Made by a program: the position numbers and the translations under genes. The notes beneath the pieces are model-generated. The model saw nothing but the letters and a program-made list of their open reading frames with translations, was not told the origin of the DNA and did no database searches. DNA of 63,127 nt, filler included, from Octopus bimaculoides (Eukaryota): NCBI RefSeq assembly GCF_001194135.2. It is 6 parts of 5 records of this genome, joined end to end, with 100 filler letters (N's around TTAATTAATTAA, not from the genome) between each part and the next. Parts side by side here need not be neighbours in the genome. Positions count along the whole stretch, not along the records: positions 29,647 to 51,773 come from NC_069004.1; 5 more parts are not named here. One strand, given 5' to 3'. Positions 34,401 to 51,773 of this stretch are shown one piece after another. Positions within the stretch are counted from its first letter, which is position 1. Each line of letters opens with the position of its first letter.

Positions 34401-37400
34401 GCAGACTTGTTTTAAGAAGGGTTCCAGCCATGGACTTCCATTCTTATCCCCAGACTCAATTGGCCCATAAACTGTTTGTTGAGTCTTTGAGACAGAGGAA
34501 GGTGATGAATGGGGTAGTGGGGTGGGGGCTGAAGACATTGCCTTGTTCTTGTCAAACTGAGAGTCCTTGTCTTTGCAACAGTATAGGCTTCAGCTGTCCA
34601 ACAGTTACATGGTGGCAGTAATCCAGGCAACAGTTTATATTGATCACCGAAGGACTGGTTCAATTCATCCAACAAACTTCTGTGTTTTTATTAATCCAAA
34701 GGTTGGATTAGATTCTTTCTAGAAGACCCTTATCCGAGGTACTGTGCATTGGGATTGATCCTGGTGCCATGCGGTTATCGATGCTTATAACCCTTTACCA
34801 ATGTTTTGTAAATATTGGGTGTAATTTGTAGGAGATTTGCTTGCTATTTCTAGCAATTTGGAAGCCTGCAGAGATCAGTTCCTAGCCTTTTCACTTTCAG
34901 GACCCTCTCTCCGCCTCCTTTTTATTTAAGTAAATTTCCTATGGAAGCCAGGCCTTTAAAAAGTTTGTCAACTCAAGTTTTGAACTCATCTCACCAACTC
35001 TTCCTCACTTTCTTCCACACCATCAGATCTCGGACTGCTCACATAGATCCTCTCTTTTTTGTTGACAGTAAATTCACTTGACCTTTTCTACCCCAATTCA
35101 TTTCATTGTTGTTATTTAACTTTCGACTCAGCCTTCATTTAGCTGATCCATGAAAGTCATTCCAGTCATGACCATTCCATCTGTCTTCTGTGCAGAGTGT
35201 TAGAGACTATCTGAGTTAACCTAAGAATATGAAGCAGAACCTTTCATCCCTTCTGAAGTTAAAATGAAATCCCAGTGCAGTACTCGAGTGGATGGCAGTG
35301 ACTAGCCCCTCCCCTCAAAATTGCTGGCCTTGTTCCTAAATCAGAAGCAATTATTATTGGTGGTGGATGGCTGAGTTTGTGCATCAAACAAAATGCATTG
35401 AGTTGAAATCATGTCAAAGTTGACTTTCCCTTTCATCTTCAAGGAGTTGATAAAATAAAGGACCAGTCATCTCGCCATTGTCGGTTTATGTCCACTTTTG
35501 CATGCTAGTAAGGGTTAGATATTTTAAGTTGGTATTTTATGCAAGATGCCCTTGCTGTTACCCTTTTGGTCACCACAGGGATTTGCTGTACCCATTTGAA
35601 ACCCGAGGTCCTTGTAATTATTATTTAAAGTTTTTCTTTGATCTTTTCACTTGTTATACTGTTATCTTAGATTTTCTTTATCCGTTTTAGGGGCCATGTG
35701 GCCATAATTGTCAACGTTGCAAGCAAATGAGGCTTAACTCCCTCTAACTACACACAGTTAGAGGAACTTTATCAAAAGTATAGTGAGTCTAAGGGTCTTC
35801 GTATTCTAGCCTTCCCATGTAACCAATTTGCTTCCCAGGTAAGTTCTCTAACTTCTTATTCTAAGACAAATTTCCTCAAAGTTTCTTCACAGGATCCCCA
35901 AAATTCTGGGATAGAATTTAGGGGTTCCACAAGGGTTTTTTTTTTTTTTATTAAAATTTAGAAAATTTAGTTTATGAAACAAATACCACTTTAGAGATGT
36001 TTATATTTTTTTTATATTATTTCTCTAAAATTGTTTTTGTTTTGTCTTAATTGGAGTCAGGATTCTGGGATTTTAGTAATTCTGAGTTCAAATCTCACTT
36101 TGACCTCCTTGGGTGGCATTTCGTCTATGACTCAGTAACAAATGAAATGCCACCCAAAGAGGTCACATTTAATGTCCACTTTCTGAGGAATATTCGAGTC
36201 AAGTCTGTGCCTGAAAGGTATCTTTCTCCCTCACTTTTGGAGGCTTTGTAGTCTTGTCTCAGTTTGTCCCCGTATTATCTCCAACGACGTAGTTCTATTT
36301 TTTTTTCTTTAAATCAGTGGTATAAGGGAGGCAACTCTTCTCCACACATCTTTAAATTTTCAATATTATTTTATTAGCGATAATCGAAATTTCTGAAGTT
36401 AGCCTGGCCTTTGCCCAAAGATGAACTGTAAATTATTCAGCGGCGAGCTGAGTTGTTACTGCGCCAGACAAAATGCTGAGTGGAATTTCGTCCATTGTTA
36501 CTTTCAGAGTTCAAATTCTGCCGAGGTTGACTTGCATTTCATCCTTTCACCAGTTGAACCCTAGGGTCAATGTAATCAACGACCCACCCCCACCAAATTT
36601 CAATCCTTGTGCCTATAGTAGAAAGGATTATTATTATTATTATTATTAGTAGTAGTAGTAGTATTTAGATGTCGAGTTGGCAGAATTGTTAGCAAGCCAG
36701 ATAAAATGCTTAGCAATGTTTTGCCCATTGCTAAGTTCTGAGTTCAAATTTCGCTGAGGTCGACTTTGCTTTTTGACCTTTTGAGGTCGATAAAGTAAGT
36801 ACCAGTGAAACACCAGGATCGATATCACCGACTAGTCCCCTCCCGCAAAATTCCGAGGCTTTGTGCCTTCAGTGGAAAGGATGATGATGATGATGATGGT
36901 GGTTGTTGTTGTTGTGGATTAGCTTAAGTGTTAGATCATTGGAGAACATGTTTTGTGTTTCAAGTTACACTGATCGGACTTTCCTCCTTCTGCGGATTAA
37001 TAAAGTATCAGTCTAGTTGTGGGATCGATCACATTGACTAAACCCATCCACTAAAAACTGCTATGTGCCGAAAGGAAGGGAATTGGCAGAATCGTTAGAG
37101 CATCTGACAAAATACTTGATCTTTGTTTTACCTCTTAACATTTGGAGCTCAAATCCCACCACAGTGTTGTGTCTATAAAGCCAAATAACTATCATCTACT
37201 GGAGAAAATCTAATTAACAGCTCTCTGTACCTAAAACTGGGGTCTCTTTGGTGAGGCTACCATCTACTGCAGCAGTAGATGTCTCCATGGTACTACTTTA
37301 TTCTGTATTAGATAGTAAGGTACAAGATAAGGGAGATTTTCTGCACTTTCTAGCTGATAAAGCAACCATGTACAAGCACTGAAATGCACCTCAGATTCTA

Positions 37401-39931
37401 GTCTGGAAGTAAAATAGGAAATTGTTAAAATTGACAGATTTTTGTGCATCAAAAATTGTTTTTGTTTCTTATAGGAACCTGGAACTAACGAAGAGATCAA
37501 AGATTTTGTTAGTAAAAAATATCAAGTTTCTTTTGATATGTTCAGTAAAATAGACGTGAATGGCAAGTCAGCTCACCCTTTGTGGATATTTTTGAAAAAA
37601 GAACAGCCTGGATTTCTAACTGAGTAAGGAGGAACTTTTCTCAACTTCATTTATTTTCCTCAATAATTTAATAGCAATTTTCAAATTGTAGATTTTTTAA
37701 TATGTCTGTCATGCATGCGAAATGAAAAGAGGTTCACCTACCTTCTTCTCTCGTCTGTGCTTGTCTAGTAGTAGTCACTCCAGTGATCCTGCCCTACCCT
37801 GTCACCCAGTGCTATCTGACCAACCCAGGAGAGAATCCCCTGACGTCCGTCCACGATGCCTCAGCCAGCTAAAAGAGCCCGACCCTGTCCTGTCTCCCCT
37901 GCACTTCCCTTCTCATGCTTCTTCTTCCAGTCAGTCCCTTGACCATTGACGTCATGGCCCTCTTCCGGCTCATCCCTACACACCCCCGTTGATCTCAAAG
38001 ATCACCTCCTCACTTCAATCCATGTTGAAATCTACCACCCACCTGGGTGGGCACCTTGCATGTTAGGATCTTCTTAAACTGGGAACCTCATTCTCTTCCT
38101 CTTCTCCACAATCATCACCCAACGAAACAACAATCCTACGAACATCCAAAGCATGACACAACATTCCATCCACAGTGATATCGTTTTTGGAATTAACAGC
38201 CGTCACTATTTCTCTGTTCAACTGAATTGTGCAGCGTGCCTTTGGTGGCTGTCCAATGACTGAAACTGTTGAAAGAATAAAGTCTATTTATTTGTATTTC
38301 ATGTTGCAGTGGCATCAAATGGAATTTGACCAAATTCCTCATCAACAAAGAAGGTGTTCCTGTGAAACGTTATGGTCCAAAAACAGCCCCAAAGGTGACT
38401 CTTTACACTTTTCTCTTCTGCCATTAACAATGTTAAGCTGGTCTTTTATTGTTTGGTTGTTAAATGATATTGAGGCATTGTCTTATAGTCGGATGCCTTT
38501 CCCTTGATAACACTGTGTAACACAATTTTTGTGTAGCAACTGGGTAGCAACTGCTTTTTTCTTTTTATTTACTTACGCCAGTATGAAAAATAGCTAATAT
38601 TTCCTTCAAACTTTACTTTTGTTACATTTAGGCAAATCTCTATGATGCTCCCCCACTATTCTTGCTCACGGTCAGAGCCAATAAGGGACATGCTCAAGTG
38701 GTTAATGTCAAGCAACTGTCAACAGAATACTTGCTATAATGATATTTTTGTTTCAGCAACTCTGTGCTGAATCTATTTGAAATGTAATGAAAAATAAGTC
38801 AGTTTCAAAACATTGATGTCCAGGTCACAAAAGCCAAGTTTGAAGAGAATAGTTGTCATTTCAATTGATTTCTAGATAGAAGCAAATAGGAAATAGCACT
38901 TTACTGATCAAAGACAAAAATTTGATCCGTTGTGTAATTTTCCCTTTTATTCCATAAAGATTATTTCTTCCACTTATTTTTCAAAATGCTGATCTCAAGG
39001 GTGAATTTTTTTTTTTTCTGACAAACTTGACTGAATTTTAAACTTAATGTAAGATACAGATTATAAACATAAAAACACTCCATGTACACTTATAAATGAC
39101 AGGCTTCTCAACAGTTTCCACCTACCAATTTCACTCACGAACCATTGGCTGTCCCACAGCAGTAATAGAAGGCACTTGCCCAAGGTGATTCACATGAAGC
39201 CATACTTGCTCTTTGATAGTAAAAAAAAAAGTGGCGGGACAGGAGTGGCCGTGTGGTTGAGGTTTGCTTCCCAATCACATGGTTTTGGGTTCATACCCAC
39301 TTCATGGCACCTTGGGAATGTCTTCTGCTATAACCCTGGGCCAACCAAAGCCTGTTTGTATGCATGTGTTGATGCCTCCTTTACTGGATATTGCATCAGT
39401 TGTAAACAAGTGTCACTGCCATGACAAGTCCTTTGTCTCCAGTCTTCTGAGATCTTTTCTGGTCATGGGAAAATATTACTGTTAAATAGAAACCAATGAG
39501 GATTAGCAACAAGGAGGGTATCCAGTTGTAGATTATAATTTCTAGTTTGGGCACACAGGGCCAGCTATTTTTTGAGGGGAGGGGGGGAGTCAGTTACATT
39601 GAGCCCAGTGCTCAACTGGGCTCAATGTAACTGACTTCTGAAAGGATGAAAGGCAATCTGTCTTGGCAGCATCTGAACTCAGAATGTAAAGATGCAGAAG
39701 AAATAGCATTGAGCATTTTGTCCAGTGTAGTAATGGTTCCTTCATCTGACTACCTTTCTATATCTGCTCTCTCACTCACACATCTATCTATCTATATCTA
39801 TATCTGTCTGTCTGTCTGTCTAATTGTCTGTCTGTCTAATTGTCTGTCTGTCTAATTGTCTGTCTGTCTAATTGTCTGTCTGTTTCTTGTCTTTTCAGGA
39901 AATAGAAAAAGACTTGGCTATTTATTGGTAA
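31345..39931 (+). CDS. GPX4: Selenoprotein glutathione peroxidase, GPx4/PHGPx-like; 6 coding exons: join(31345..31422,34302..34378,35691..35838,37475..37623,38310..38394,39899..39931), 189 aa, Sec65
   Basis: Manual splicing gives one frame with GT-AG introns and matching phases (0,2,0,2,0): [189 protein letters not shown]. GPx motifs NVASx[22 protein letters not shown] and KWN are present. Exons 2-6 are secure; exon 1 is less so. Confidence 0.93.
32940..34250 (-). mobile_element. CRE-clade-like non-LTR retrotransposon fragment in GPx4 intron 1 (antisense)
   Basis: ILGLPI...[28 protein letters not shown]; QRKWDTI...[13 protein letters not shown]; C-terminal RLFQCIS../LQGNAFSIL. These resemble CRE ORF blocks; many stops and frameshifts. 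Confidence 0.7.
34302..34378 (+). CDS. GPX4: GPx4 exon 2 ([26 protein letters not shown])
   Basis: tgttatttcag| acceptor and CG|gtaagt donor; matches the GPx4 N-terminal pattern EFSAKxIDGxxVxLxKYRG. Confidence 0.93.
35691..35838 (+). CDS. GPX4: GPx4 exon 3 with the in-frame Sec codon TGA at 35728-35730
   Basis: ccgttttag| acceptor and CAG|gtaagt donor; VNVASK-TGA-GLT at the catalytic position; [12 protein letters not shown]. Confidence 0.96.
36436..36878 (+). mobile_element. Two diverged SINE family A copies in GPx4 intron 3
   Basis: cggcgagctg...gagttcaaattctgccgaggttgac...ccttgtgcctatagtagaaagga, repeated after an (ATT)n(AGT)n tail. Confidence 0.75.
37475..37623 (+). CDS. GPX4: GPx4 exon 4
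   Basis: tttcttatag| acceptor and GA|gtaagg donor; [11 protein letters not shown]...[22 protein letters not shown]. Confidence 0.95.
37750..38190 (-). mobile_element. Gypsy-type LTR retrotransposon 3' end (integrase C-terminus, PPT, LTR) in GPx4 intron 4
   Basis: Minus frame [15 protein letters not shown]...[18 protein letters not shown] resembles the .VDG..RH..D.R...LRRS.R...PP..DY pol tail. Followed by G-rich aacgggggtg and a TG-starting LTR (TGTAGGGATG at 37980). Confidence 0.55.
38310..38394 (+). CDS. GPX4: GPx4 exon 5
   Basis: atgttgcag| acceptor and AAG|gtgact donor; [23 protein letters not shown]. Confidence 0.95.
39545..39735 (-). mobile_element. SINE family A copy in GPx4 intron 5, containing a perfect 20-bp-arm palindrome
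   Basis: ggcacacagggcc...gaaaggatgaaaggcaa...gaactcagaatgtaaag in minus orientation. Confidence 0.75.
39899..39931 (+). CDS. GPX4: GPx4 exon 6 coding part ([10 protein letters not shown])
   Basis: cttgtcttttcag| acceptor; IEKDL motif as at the GPx4 C-terminus; ends in TAA; followed by the SECIS. Confidence 0.9.
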   Translation, partial: EIEKDLAIYW

Positions 39932-39990
39932 CCAAACCCCTTACTCTCTCAGACTGACATTCTATGGTGTTGACTATTCTGACGTAACTT

Positions 39991-40036
39991 ATGAAGGAAG
40001 TTTCCTAAAACCATTCCTTGGTAGAAAACTCCTGAT
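39991..40036 (+). promoter_or_regulatory. Type II SECIS element in the GPx4 3' UTR
   Basis: A-UGAA (39991-39995) pairs opposite UGAU (40033-40036) as the quartet. Helix II is GGAAGUUUCCU/AGAAAACUCC, with one bulge and one mismatch. Unpaired AAA at 40007-40009. Apical mini-helix ACCA/UGGU with a UUCCU loop. Helix I is not clearly resolved by eye. Confidence 0.88.
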
Positions 40037-40128
40037 TTCTCTGGTTTCTCTCATTTTGGTCAACACTGTTTTGATGTCTGTCTGTTTGTCCCTCCTTCAC
40101 TTCATTAATTTTTTTTTTTTTTTATTCA

Positions 40129-40172
40129 ATTAAAACAAAAATAGTTCAGTCACTCAGTGTTGTTGTTGCTTG
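40129..40172 (+). terminator. Probable GPx4 polyadenylation signal (ATTAAA) with downstream GT-rich element
   Basis: ATTAAA at 40129-40134, about 95 nt after the SECIS, followed by gtgttgttgttgcttg at about 40157-40172. Confidence 0.5.
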
Positions 40173-41164
40173 ATTCATTAATATTTTCTGGAACTGTTGT
40201 TAATTACATGGACCAGTAATTACTGGTACACTGTATTTTTACAGGTGAGTGTCTGTACAACTCGGGCAGAGTAAATATCACAAGGTATTTTGGTTCAGAC
40301 ATTTGTTGGTTCAACATCTGAAGATGTGGGATGAATTTTCTTAAAACCAAGACTGGTGTGAGGAAGGGCAACCATGTGGAGGGTACTTGAGGGAGATATG
40401 TCATTGTTGGCATTAGTGTCAAAATGCAAGGGTCTGTCAGTCCATTGCCTAGGGTTTGTACTTTTTTTTTATTTATCTTAAAGAGCAAAGTTAACCTCTG
40501 AGCAATTTGAACTCGGAACAAATACCACAAGATATTCTATCCAACAACCTAACAATGGCAGTAGGGCACGGGGGTTGCCAGGGTTGGAAAGGAGATAAGT
40601 TATTCATCCACCACTGGGAAGAAGATTGAAGAATTTTTTTTTTTTTCTAATTAATAAAGGTGATGGANNNNNNNNNNNNNNNNNNNNNNNNNNNNNNNNN
40701 NNNNNNNNNNNNNNNNNNNNNNNNNNNNNNNNNNNNNNNNNNNNNNNNNNNNNNNNNNNNNNNNNNNNNNNNNNNNNNNNNNNNNNNNNNNNNNNNNNNN
40801 NNNNNNNNNNNNNNNNNNNNNNNNNNNNNNNNNNNNNNNNNNNNNNNNNNNNNNNNNNNNNNNNNNNNNNNNNNNNNNNNNNNNNNNNNNNNNNNNNNNN
40901 NNNNNNNNNNNNNNNNNNNNNNNNNNNNNNNNNNNNNNNNNNNNNNNNNNNNNNNNNNNNNNNNNNNNNNNNNNNNNNNNNNNNNNNNNNNNNNNNNNNN
41001 NNNNNNNNNNNNNNNNNNNNNNNNNNNNNNNNNNNNNNNNNNNNNNNNNNNNNTTCAAGAATAAACTCTCAATTACGTAACATTTTCATTATAACATTTT
41101 TTACTTCAAATGGTCGTGCCTGATTCAACATTATTCTTAAAGAAATTAAAGAAAAAAGAAAGGC

Positions 41165-41705
41165 ACCATAACACGATTGGGTTAGCAGTAGTGGAGGTCA
41201 TTCTGAAAGCTTAGCTGCTGAAATCAGAACATGCTGGGCAAAGTTCAGAGATCTGCCTCTGTTAGTAACAAAGGGCTTCTCCCTCAGAATAAAAGGCACA
41301 TCGTATGATGCCTGTGTGTATGAACAGCTATGCTACATGGCAGTGAAACACAAGCTGTAACTACAGAGTACATGTGAAGGCTTGAAAGAAACGAAGCCAG
41401 AATGCTTTGCTGGATGGGTAATATCAGTGTGCCTGTATGAGAGAGTGTAAGCGATTTGAGAGAAAAACTGGATATGAGGCATCAGATGTAGGCAAAGGAG
41501 AAAACTGCTGGTTTGGTTATGTGTTGCATATGGATGAGGACAGTTGCATGAAGTGTCAATCTGTAATTGTGGAGAGAACAAGTGGAAGGGGTAGATGCAG
41601 GAAGACATGGGATGAAGTGGTGAGAAAGGATTTTCAGATGCTGGGCTTCACTGAGAGGATGACAAGGAACTGAGACTTCTGGTGGTCCGTTGTGCTTGAG
41701 AAGAC
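41165..41705 (+). mobile_element. Decayed RTE-clade LINE ORF2 C-terminal fragment
   Basis: RTCWAKFRDL/PLLVTKG, then WFGYVLHMDEDSCMK...GRGRCRKTWDEVVRKD; same family as 45100-46410 and 48131-48852. Confidence 0.8.
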
Positions 41706-45099: not shown

Positions 45100-46410
45100 A
45101 TCATCATCATCATTGTTTAACATCCATTTTCCATGCTAGCATGGGTTGGATGGTTTGATTGAAGACTGGCAAGCCAGTAGGCTGCACCAGGCTCAATTTG
45201 ATCTGGTAAAGTTTCTACAGCTGGATGCCCTTCCTAACACCAACCACTCCGAGAGTGTCGTGGATGCTTTTTACATGCCACTGGCATGGGATTCAGTCAG
45301 GCAGCACTGACAGCAGCCACATTTGAGTGGAGCTTTTTACATTCCACCAGCATTGGGAGCACTGGCATTGACCCATGCTCAAATGGTGCTTATTATGTGC
45401 CACCAGCACAGGTGCCAATCAGGTGGTACAAGCATTGGCCATGGCTACAATTTCACTTGACCCAATAGGTCTTCTCAAGCACAGCATATTGCCTGATGAT
45501 TTTAGGGTACTTTTAAATAGGCTGGTTATGTGACACTGGCATTAGTCACGGCTGCGATCTCACTTTACTTGCCGAGTCTTCTCAATCACAGCAGATCTCC
45601 AAAGGTCTTGGTCTCTTATCATTGCCTCTGTGAGGCCCAACATTCAAAGGTTGTACTTCACCCCCTCATCCCATGTCTTTCTGGGTCTCCCTCTTCCACA
45701 GATTCCTTCCATTGTTAGGGTGTGATACTTCTTCACACAGCTCTCCTCATCCATACACAGCACATGACCATACCAGCACGTCTCTCCTGCACACCACATC
45801 TGCTTCATTTCTTTCAAGCCTAGGCATGGCCCATATTTCGTTGCCATGGTAGCACACATGTATCATACAGTTGACCTTTCACTCTGAGTGAGAGACCCTT
45901 TGTTACCAGCAGAGGTAGGAGCTTTCTGAACTTTGCCCAGGCTATTCTTATTCTAGCGGCTTTGCTCTCAGAGCATCCACCCCCACTACAGACTTGATCT
46001 CCTAGGTAGCAGAAGCTATCAACTACTTCTAGTATCTGCCCCTGGCATGTGATAGAATCTGTTTTCTGTTCATCTTCGGTGTTTATTGCCCCTGTGCATC
46101 TGCCACACACAAAAAACTATCTTCCCAGTTAACTTTCCTTTGATATTGCTGCACCTCTTATGTGTCCATAGCTTACACTGGGTACATCTTATGGGGTTTC
46201 TACCTATACCTTTTTCTACAGATTGAGCAGGGCCACCTACCTGAAGGGATTTGTGATTTGTCTGCCTTCCTATTTACTAAGACTTTGGTTTTTGCTAGAT
46301 TGACTCTAAGGCCCTTCGATTCTAGACCCTGTTTCCACACCTGAAACTTCATCTCTAGTTCTGGTAGTGACTCAGCTATTAGAGCAAGGTCATCAGCATA
46401 GAGGAGCTAT
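45100..46410 (-). mobile_element. 5'-truncated RTE-clade LINE (RT C-half plus 3' UTR with short ATG/TGA-repeat tail)
   Basis: LLYADDLALIAES (about 46370-46405), GLRVNLAKTKV, VDSFCYLGD, RIRIAWAKFRKLLPLL, WYGHV, GRGRPRKTW; 3' UTR ends ...ttaaacaatgatgatgatg. Confidence 0.9.
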
Positions 46411-48130
46411 GGAAGGTTTGTGCAGAGATTACAAACACCTGCACCACCTTTCTCATCTATTATCACTTGATAATCATACCTTGCTCTAGTTCTGACCAGA
46501 CTGGAGCACATGCTCTTTCACTTTCTTCTACTCATCAGGTTGCCGTCAGCATCCACAAAGTGATGGCTGATGATGCAGAGACACGTTTTAAGGCCATGAT
46601 TTCTTCAGTAAATTTTTAGACAGTGAACAGGTGTGATTATTATGTCAGATGAGTCATTTAAATCAGAAAGTGTAAAAGACCTTACATCTGAAATAAGGGG
46701 ACAACTTAGGTTTTTGAAGGGATTTGCAATGTTTTGATGTCAAAAATGCAGTTGCATCTTGGAACAATTCATACTTTAGATCTTGTATATTTCTGGTTGT
46801 GTATCGGCACCAGTAGTTTGTCGGTGACTGATGTGACTGGAATTTCTGTTTACCTTTGTCTGTGCATGCTTTTGGTGTTGTTGTTGTTTTGTGCTTCATA
46901 AAGCCAGTTTTTCCCCTTTCAGAGAGAGTAGTGGAGTTGAAGATTTATCTCTGTCTGCTGTTCTTCTTGTTGTTGTTTTGCTTGTGTTTGTGATGAGACT
47001 TTATGTGATTGAAGTTTTATTTGTTTTTGTTTACATCCAGCTTATTACCACTGTTGTTGCTGTTGTAGTGGTGGTGGTGGTGCTGGTGACCCTTTTCTCT
47101 CTTCCTTCTACTTCTATGACCTTTTTCACACCAAATACAGTAGAACAAAAAAAATAAGACACAAAGCTTCCTTTCTTGTTGTTTTCTGTAGGAATGTTGG
47201 TATTTAAAACAGGGTAGGTTGGTTTTTAAACTGGACGAACAGGCAAAATATTCAGAACAGTTTGGTGACAAAAATGACAAAATTGAGAAAAGAAAGAGTT
47301 AAAACTGAAAAACCTTTTGGCCAGTTTCTTGTCCTTCATTAAAACTTGAAGTAATTAAACCACATTCTATTAAATATTTTTTTTGTTCCTGATTTCAGCC
47401 ACTGGACTGTGGCCCTTCTGGAGCACTGACTTGGATTTCAGTCAATCATTCTGAAACCAGAAATTATATCAGCTTGGTATTTATTTTATCGATTTTGATT
47501 TATTGAACCCCTAAGTTACAGTTTTGATATGAAGAGGTGTAACTTGACCTTAGTTCAGACCACTTTCATGAGCACACACACACACACACACACATGACGA
47601 GCTTGCACAGTTTCTGCCAATCAAATCCCACTCACAAGGTATTGGTCAACCCTAAGTGGTGAAAGAAAGATAAGGAAGACTTGATATCATTTGTGTTGTT
47701 GCTTCAGAGGTGTCATACTCCTCTGCTGCCCCAACTGTTGACAACCCTCTTTGATGTGTTGATTGTCATTGGATGTCTGTTGTTGTTGCTGTTGTTGTAT
47801 CACCAGCAACACTGATGGTTCATGTTTTTTTTTGTTTTTTTTGTGAACAGAAGGTTCTCAGGTGATTGTATTACCACATGTGTGGTACCTAGGATTTCTG
47901 CATTCTACCATGATATGCAGTTAGGTGTTGTTTGAAAGGTTTCTCTGACTGGGAATATTGTCCAGATTTTTTTGACTGTATATGACTTCGACTTCTATAA
48001 AAAATTCTGAGCCAATTTTCCTGATGGTACCTTTTCACATGCAAGGTTGTGTCCTCTTCCTTAAGAATAACACATGTCATACACCACAATTATTCTTCAA
48101 TTCTGTTGGCACGTTCATCACTTTTGTAAT

Positions 48131-48852
48131 CACCAGTATGCTCCGTTGGATGTGTAATGTCAATGTGAATACCCGTCAGAGTGTAAGTATCTTGAGAGAA
48201 AAGCTGAACATTAGAAGCATCAGTTGTGGTGTGCAAGAGAGACGATTGCGCTGGTATGGACATGTGGTGAGAATGGATGAGGATAGCTGCGTGAAAAAGT
48301 GCCACACCCTAACAGTTGAGGGAACCCGTGGAAGAGGTAGGCCCAGGAAGACCTGGGCTGAGGTGGTGAGGCAAGACCTTCGTACATTGGGCCTCACCGA
48401 GGCGATGACTACTGACCGAGACCTTTGGAAANNNNNNNNNNNNNNNNNNNNNNNNNNNNNNNNNNNNNNNNNNNNNNNNNNNNNNNNNNNNNNNNNNNNN
48501 NNNNNNNNNNNNNNNNNNNNNNNNNNNNNNNNNNNNNNNNNNNNNNNNNNNNNNNNNNNNNNNNNNNNNNNNNNNNNNNNNNNNNNNNNNNNNNNNNNNN
48601 NNNNNNNNNNNNNNNNNNNNNNNNNNNNNNNNNNNNNNNNNNNNNNNNNNNNNNNNNNNNNNNNNNNNNTGCGGGTGACACGTAAAAGCACCCACTACAC
48701 TCTCTGAGTGGTTGGCGTTAGGAAGGGCATCCAGCTGTAGAAACTCTGCCAAATTAGATTGGAGCCTGGTGTTGCCATCCGGTTTCACCAGTCCTCAGTC
48801 AAATCGTCCAACCCATGCTAGCATGGAAAGCGGACGTTAAACGATGATGATG
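48131..48852 (+). mobile_element. 5'-truncated RTE-clade LINE copy spanning a gap
   Basis: MLRWMCNV...RRLRWYGHVVRMDEDSCVKKC...GRGRPRKTW; after the gap, 3' UTR gtggttggcgttaggaagggcatccagc...gttaaacgatgatgatg. Confidence 0.88.
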
Positions 48853-51082: not shown

Positions 51083-51436
51083 TAGATCATCAGGAAAGAA
51101 AGGTGAAAAACAATAACTACAACAACAACGACAGCAATCCTTTCTACTGAAGGCACAAGGCCTGACATTTTGGGGAAGGGGACCAGTCAATTATATTGGA
51201 CCCAGTACACAACTGGTACTTAATCTATTGACCCTGAAAGGATGACAGGCAAAATCAACCCCAGTGGAATTTGAACTCAGAATGTAAAGACGGACGAAAT
51301 GCTGCGAAGCATTTCTCCCAGCATGCTAACATTATTGTAACAGTTTCAGATCAGGATGCTCGCATAAGTTGCATGCATTTTCTCCCTTTTGATGGAATTT
51401 TCCAATTTCGTTTTTCTGCCAACTTGCTGCCTTATC

Positions 51437-51773
51437 ATCATCATCATCATCATCGTTTAACGTCTGCTTTCCATGCTAGCATGGGTTGGACGATTTGACT
51501 GAGGACTGGTGCAACCGGATGGCTACACCAGGCTCCAATCTGATTTGGTAGAGTTTCTACAGCTGGATGCCCTTCCTAACGCCAACCACTCAGAGAGTGT
51601 AGTGGGTGCTTTTACGTGTCACCCGCACGAAAACGGCCACACTCGAAATGGTGTCTTTTATGTGCCACCCGCACAAGAGCCAGTCCAGGGGCACTGGCAA
51701 CGATCTCGCTCGAAAATCCTACGGGAGCCAGTCAGGCGGTACTGGCAACGGCCACGCTCAAAATGGTGCATCT
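51437..51773 (-). mobile_element. RTE LINE 3' UTR copy
   Basis: Reverse complement of 48670-48852 with (CAT)n tail. Confidence 0.85.

Follow-up and report, generated by a model that had tools for sequence, protein, structure and literature searches.

The window analysed here is a stretch of 63,127 nucleotides (nt) of DNA from Octopus bimaculoides (NCBI RefSeq assembly GCF_001194135.2), assembled from six parts of five records, and the locus of interest lies in its 22 kilobase (kb) piece from NC_069004.1 (positions 29,647 to 51,773). This piece carries, on the plus strand, a glutathione peroxidase gene of the GPx4 type, whose six exons run from an ATG at 31345 to a TAA at 39929–39931 and are joined into a coding sequence of 570 nt (189 codons and the stop) with exactly one in-frame stop codon, at codon 65. 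We present evidence that this is almost certainly the gene named ObimGPx04A, which would encode a 189-residue monomeric GPx4-type peroxidase with selenocysteine (Sec, U) as its peroxidatic residue, and we describe the selenocysteine insertion sequence (SECIS) element within its 3′ untranslated region (UTR), the relatives that share the UGA codon, and the public models in which the gene already appears.

The gene structure and the position of the UGA were established directly from the genomic DNA and are collected, with the other features of the transcript, in Table 1. All five introns are of the GT–AG type, with lengths of 2879, 1312, 1636, 686 and 1504 nt, none of the ten splice sites is damaged, and the 570 nt contain neither a frameshift nor a further stop. 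The acceptors of exons 4, 5 and 6 are of the polypyrimidine/AG type and the donors of exons 4 and 5 are GT. Exon 1 was supplied by a public octopus model, and exon 2 was first located by tblastn with a human GPX4 sequence used solely as a probe. The C-terminal motif contributed by exon 6 is common to relatives, as in the ...EIEKDLDKYW of database match P0002. A sequence-only reading that preceded this analysis had placed a TGA at the peroxidatic position, had followed the frame through three more exons to a TAA and had counted five introns, all of which the reconstruction reproduces: the TGA falls in VNVASK-U-GLT, and exons 4 to 6 carry the frame on to the TAA.

Table 1. Coordinates of the ObimGPx04A coding exons and associated features, counted along the window
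Feature	Position	Strand	Description
Exon 1, coding part	31345–31422	+	ATG + 26 codons; donor GTAAGG; tblastn of public model P0001 at 100% identity
Exon 2	34302–34378	+	26 residues + split codon; acceptor tttcag, donor gtaagt
Exon 3	35691–35838	+	Sec codon and FPCNQFASQ with catalytic Gln Q101; acceptor ccgttttag, donor GTAAGT
In-frame TGA, codon 65	35728–35730	+	Peroxidatic position, VNVASK-U-GLT
Perfect 9-base-pair hairpin, candidate SRE-like (selenocysteine redefinition element)	35741–35764	+	CCUCUAACU-ACACAC-AGUUAGAGG; 6-nt loop; starts 10 nt after the UGA
Exon 4	37475–37623	+	Encodes ...KKEQPGFLT
Exon 5	38310–38394	+	Catalytic Trp-Asn pair W155, N156 in GIKWNLTKF
Exon 6, coding part	39899–39931	+	Ends in TAA 39929–39931
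Type II SECIS	39984–40048	+	3′ UTR; Rfam SECIS_1, relatives' model R1, covariation
ATTAAA	40129–40134	+	Earliest poly(A)-signal-like hexamer 3′ of the stop, at 81 nt from the SECIS

The peptide encoded by exon 1, a 26-residue N-terminal extension in which two residues are basic and none is acidic, looks like a putative N-terminal targeting peptide. There is no second in-frame ATG in exon 1 and no ATG upstream in the frame of exon 2, so that a cytosolic form could not be produced by the alternative-start route of mammals. Directly upstream of exon 1 lies a purine-rich (GA/GAA)n low-complexity tract (31020–31320), within which there are TATA-like strings such as TATATATAAATAG at about 31264–31276, roughly 70 nt before the ATG. 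At the other end of the gene, about 120 nt of microsatellite, (TCTG)n / (TCTGTCTGTCTAATTG)n at 39775–39898, abut the last exon's acceptor and make up its pyrimidine-rich tract.

The encoded protein matches the Pfam GSHPx family (PF00255) along the complete profile (positions 1–108 of 108), scoring 156.6 bits where the cut-off is 27, with an E-value of 1.8e-46. Its best matches in the PDB are GPX4 chains, with E-values of 1e-55 to 1e-59, the best natural structures being human and mouse GPX4 and a Schistosoma GPx (E about 1e-58); GPX7/8 structures match at 1e-31 to 1e-34 and the tetrameric GPX1/2/3/6 at 1e-23 to 1e-28. Residues 4–159 of the query (156 residues) align one to one with the GPX4 chains and with residues 9–188 of 1GP1 (180 residues), and as GPx1 has about 24 residues more than the query in the aligned stretch, the oligomerisation loop of the tetrameric enzymes is missing. 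Judged by these alignments the protein belongs to the monomeric GPx4 (PHGPx) subfamily, GPX4 being nearer to it than GPX1, 2, 3, 5, 6, 7 or 8. The Sec/Gln/Trp/Asn tetrad, of which the sequence-only reading had reported all four residues, is read directly in the gene model as U65, Q101 (NQFASQEPG) and W155–N156 (IKWNLTKF). Trp and Asn do not vary in an alignment of the query with 119 relatives (A1, 120 sequences), and Gln is conserved there to at least 90%.

Set beside mammalian GPX4/PHGPx (PDB 2OBI, 7L8M, 5H5Q), to which it is about 55% identical as measured against the human probe sequence, the octopus protein has in common the tetrad, the monomer-type length, a UGA within the N-terminal third, a 3′ UTR SECIS of type II and an N-terminal extension that exon 1 encodes. 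Mammalian GPX4 has seven coding exons, whereas the octopus gene has six. The Cys-type GPx4 homologues of insects (Gtpx, or 'probable phospholipid hydroperoxide glutathione peroxidase') are 61–68% identical to the octopus protein and equal to it in domain and length, but carry cysteine (Cys, TGY) in place of Sec at the peroxidatic position and so need no SECIS.

The sequence and structure of the SECIS element, too, were established directly. Its AUGA (39991–39994) is separated from the TAA by 59 nt and lies, in the spliced transcript, 434 nt after the UGA, the earlier estimates having been 60 and about 435 nt. Helix 1 has four of five pairs (G39984–C40048, A39986–U40046, A39987–U40045 and C39988–G40044), and the core consists of A39991 followed by U39992.U40036, G39993.A40035 and A39994.G40034, the AUGA thus facing the GA at 40034–40035. 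Helix 2 (39995–40006 with 40023–40033) has ten Watson–Crick pairs and is interrupted by a single C.A mismatch and by the bulge of A39999; above it an AAAA (40007–40010) is unpaired and an apical mini-helix of three base pairs, CCA/UGG (40011–40013 with 40019–40021), closes a 5-nt loop, UUCCU; the mini-helix is also present in the aligned relatives. The layout is that of a type II element, as the sequence-only reading had it, because the unpaired AAAA lies in an internal bulge and is followed by the apical mini-helix, rather than lying in the terminal loop. No AATAAA or ATTAAA was found between the stop and the SECIS in a pattern scan of 39932–40667. The assembly has gaps (runs of N) at 40668–41053, about 620 nt past the SECIS, and at 48432–48669, and because of the former a longer 3′ UTR is untraceable beyond 40668.

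When the 22 kb piece was searched on both strands with 4227 Rfam families, the sole SECIS match was this one, to SECIS_1 at 24.7 bits and an E-value of 0.74, which amounts to about 2e-4 for the single named family; in a scan of the 3′ region alone the SECIS_1 E-value was 0.025 over all families. The same model gave 21.7, 23.1, 23.4, 26.3, 31.7 and 41.3 bits on six of nine distinct UGA-containing GPx4 messenger RNAs (mRNAs) of relatives, and three of these six elements begin 60–64 nt past the stop, as the octopus element does. Loci L005, L007 and L012 gave no SECIS_1 match at E-values up to 10, no hand search having been made, and the contig of the nearest relative (L001, 75% identical) stops at the stop codon and so is without a 3′ UTR for comparison. 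A covariance model, R1, was built from the six relatives' elements with the octopus window left out and was run with the search filters off; its sole significant match in the piece is 39978–40043, at 20.1 bits and an E-value of about 0.02, against 9.2 bits (E 3) for the runner-up. When the window is aligned with the six relatives (seven sequences in all), 87.9% of the cells of helix 2 and the mini-helix are paired, against 32–51% when the partners are slid by 1–3 columns, compensatory double changes occur in 10 of the 13 pairs, and the covariation score was reached by none of 500 shuffles.

The UGA codon can likewise be followed into relatives. At the Sec column the 119 best database relatives have Cys in 82 cases, those with names being mostly insects, and 'W' in 37. 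The 'W' position is a TGA in all ten of the distinct relatives' contigs that were fetched, which are intron-less and mRNA-like, so the 'W' in those proteins stems from gene callers that used a code reading TGA as Trp, and TGA at the Sec position is the rule among non-insect relatives.

Many public GPx4-type protein entries (database matches P0002–P0140; loci L001–L012) are artefacts of the UGA. A second homology search, made with the C-terminal 67 residues for cephalopod fragments, gave a best match of 69% and no closer orthologue; most of its matches are fragments of 67–116 residues that begin past the Sec position, among them Schistosoma mekongi MN116_000368 and a Labeo rohita 'glutathione peroxidase 4a'. 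A metagenome scan for close relatives returned 80 loci, all at 59% identity or less, and an active-site motif search in them gave 80 matches, 77 with Cys and three with TGA; many of the Cys-bearing loci are on long contigs that look microbial. The metagenome loci are of no use for testing the SECIS or the hairpin listed in Table 1. In two of the metagenome contigs, L074 and L075, an in-frame TGA interrupts a GPx-like VNTASR-*-GFTPQY at about residue 537 of frame 0, and these (one contig is 112 kb long, perhaps microbial) could be bacterial Sec-containing GPx.

The gene has a place in the literature, where ObimGPx04A appears in Trenz et al. 2021 (PMC8614756, Table S1) as XM_014922939.1, with 'Yes' under SeCys and a U at residue 65, the name GPx04A being assigned by the published GPx phylogeny. 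Our reconstruction agrees with the protein printed there at 189 of 189 residues, a directly established identity, and since that protein carries U the RefSeq model of the gene is correct, and published work has made use of it. By our reading of the layout of the same table, ObimGPx04A is the RefSeq gene LOC106874999, 'glutathione peroxidase-like'. Table S1 also gives a second Sec-containing GPx4-type gene of the octopus, ObimGPx04B (XM_014914499.1), which has 62% identity to ObimGPx04A over 157 residues and shares with it VNVASKUGLT and the Sec, but differs in an N-terminus that is about 60 residues longer and in its locus, which is outside this piece. Within the 22 kb piece no second GPx gene was found, ObimGPx04B matching the exons of ObimGPx04A only (53–71% identity).

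The top database match of the protein, UniProt A0A0L8GSX8_OCTBM ('Glutathione peroxidase'), is a faulty 205-residue model of the same gene, which we could regenerate residue for residue from the window with AG/GT boundaries. The model takes 31345–31422 and 34302–34378, inserts a spurious exon from intron 2 (34587–34701, 115 nt), restarts at 35758 behind an internal CAG acceptor, so leaving out the 67 nt of exon 3 in which the UGA lies, and proceeds through 37475–37623 to 38310–38427, where it runs 33 nt into intron 5 (38395–38427) up to a TAA and misses exon 6. It cleanly illustrates the 'Skipped' type among the selenoprotein misannotations set out in a 2026 survey (PMC12822975). An exact look-up against a collection of 15 billion proteins met neither the corrected protein, its Sec written as X or as W, nor the 64-residue truncated product, and the mis-spliced model alone was present; this has no bearing on RefSeq. 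The expectation of the sequence-only reading that automated pipelines would truncate or mis-splice the gene therefore held for the UniProt entry and failed for RefSeq, and its description of the gene as hidden has to be given up in view of XM_014922939.1 and Trenz et al. The gene and its Sec are already known, and of the public models examined one older one is wrong.

Some observations weigh against reading codon 65 as Sec. The SECIS score of 24.7 bits lies below the Rfam gathering score of 35, the thermodynamic fold of the element (-14.8 kcal/mol, z +0.81) is no better than that of shuffled sequence, and the searchable collections hold no closer cephalopod orthologue, the best matches being 75% and 69% identical. 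The fold energy neither helps nor hurts, because SECIS function rests on non-Watson–Crick pairs, and the Rfam cut-off is too strict for this group, because five of the six relatives' elements get just 21.7–31.7 bits. Under the covariance-model scoring that the sequence-only reading had named, the score is under the Rfam cut-off but in the range of the relatives, and R1 finds the element uniquely. If translation really ended at the TGA, we would be looking at a Cys-type GPx that had become a pseudogene or null allele and yields a 64-residue fragment, a view that could appeal to the low SECIS score and to the fact that TGA is one substitution away from TGC or TGT, the Cys of 82 of the 119 relatives, mostly insects. 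We hold it to be very improbable, for a stop at codon 65 would have to be squared with 570 nt that are free of any other stop or frameshift, with ten intact splice sites, with a SECIS of correct core and geometry 59 nt past the true stop that is a unique match in 22 kb, with a TGA at the same position in all ten distinct relatives' contigs, and with the modelling of the codon as Sec by RefSeq.

The UGA might instead be bypassed, at the level of splicing or of the base itself. If A0A0L8GSX8 were a genuine UGA-avoiding isoform, with exon 34587–34701, the restart at 35758 and retention of intron 5, this would account for a deposited public model that can be rebuilt exactly from AG/GT boundaries in the window, but its product would be without the VNVASKUG active-site strand, would contain 38 residues (LQLSNSYM...INPK) that have no counterpart in the 119 relatives, whose alignment is unbroken there, and would lose the conserved C-terminal EIEKDL..YW to an intron-encoded end. 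As the model also fits the 'Skipped' class of misannotation (PMC12822975), there is scarcely any likelihood that the isoform is real. Adenosine-to-inosine (A-to-I) editing of the UGA to UGG (Trp) in the RNA would be a different way round Sec, and is the least likely of these explanations, to which we give hardly any credence. Coleoid cephalopods edit their mRNAs extensively in this manner, and it is from this general knowledge, with nothing in our analysis to back it, that the idea draws what appeal it has. With Trp as peroxidatic residue the enzyme would have no activity and a conserved SECIS would be needless, and the minimum free energy fold of exon 3 and its flanks puts the UGA at the 5′ end of a 6-base-pair helix, GAGGCU/AGCCUU, and not inside a long duplex. 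The Sec reading of codon 65 is the one that we retain.

The hairpin that follows the UGA was considered as a possible aid to recoding. The 16 codons past the UGA fold at -12.8 kcal/mol, which is matched by 2.5–2.8% of versions in which these codons are randomly recoded with synonymous ones, and the arms of the hairpin are partly made of synonymous codon choices. The relative L002, which also encodes GLTPSNY-QL, has an 11-base-pair hairpin in the same register with the loop of 6 nt at the same position (0.3% of recodings as good), and differs from octopus by compensatory changes, third-position UCU/UUA to AGC/UUG and a C–G to a G–C pair. A weaker in-register stem in L001 is not significant (14–28% of recodings), and the other eight of the 11 sequences have CUN leucine codons and no such hairpin, which is in register in two or three of the 11 only. 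The selenocysteine redefinition element (SRE) of SELENON offers a likeness, in that a stable coding-region stem-loop stands a few nt 3′ of the Sec UGA, at a spacing of about 6 nt as against 10 nt in octopus. Such elements belong to some mammalian selenoprotein mRNAs, a concept cited in PMC9599142. That the hairpin acts as a coding-region stimulator of recoding like the SELENON SRE, in a subset of invertebrate GPx4 mRNAs, is doubtful; the conserved peptide forces much of the complementarity, the sample is small and the hairpin is a weak lead, which may be a by-product of the conserved peptide.

Repeats were also noted in the piece. Near-perfect palindromic hairpins in intron 3 (36096–36170; 65 nt, 83% self-complementarity) and intron 5 (39585–39639; 49 nt, 90%) drew matches to unrelated microRNA (miRNA) families, which were rejected as generic palindromes at 34–35 bits against cut-offs of 70–90; the former matches its miRNA model equally on both strands and the latter sits in a repeat copy, and both are probably repeat-derived. 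Dispersed short repeats in introns 3 and 5 (36456–36913 and 39570–39733) and downstream of the gene (51106–51331) are 67–76% identical to one another and look like short interspersed nuclear elements (SINEs), and ARAGORN found no transfer RNA in the piece. A repeat in three copies (41188–41705, 45576–45989 and 47982–48431), 70–80% identical and in both orientations, has an open reading frame (ORF) with ...RRLRWYGHVVRMDEDS...GRPRKTW, which we take to resemble the C-terminal region of the ORFs of non-LTR (long terminal repeat) retrotransposons and which has no Pfam match; a Pfam scan of seven longer ORFs of the introns and flanks was likewise without a match. Another repeat, of about 183 nt, is also present three times (45100–45281, 48670–48852 on the minus strand, and 51440–51627), the last two copies being 97% identical, inverted and about 2.6 kb apart, and one copy abuts the assembly gap 48432–48669.

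If the octopus gene works as characterised GPx4 homologues do, its 3′ UTR SECIS of type II, 434 nt downstream of the UGA, would recruit SBP2 and eEFSec with Sec-tRNA(Sec), and because of this recruitment the ribosome would decode the UGA at codon 65 as Sec. The Sec/Gln/Trp/Asn tetrad so completed would be expected to reduce hydroperoxides with thiols, probably lipid hydroperoxides included, its substrate range being assigned, like the Sec insertion itself, from homologues; an anti-ferroptosis role is suggested on the same ground. The sequence-only reading had spoken of the likely lipid-peroxide enzyme of this animal, a claim that is too strong in its definite article, as ObimGPx04A is not the sole candidate beside the Sec paralogue ObimGPx04B of Table S1 (PMC8614756), and with two Sec-containing GPx4-type paralogues it would be premature, ahead of experiments, to name either one as the octopus's guard against ferroptosis. 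For biology at large the finding carries little weight, a Sec-containing GPx4 with a 3′ UTR SECIS being textbook knowledge across non-insect, non-nematode animals. Its practical value is one of curation: A0A0L8GSX8_OCTBM, a chimeric model without the active site and the true C-terminus, should be replaced.

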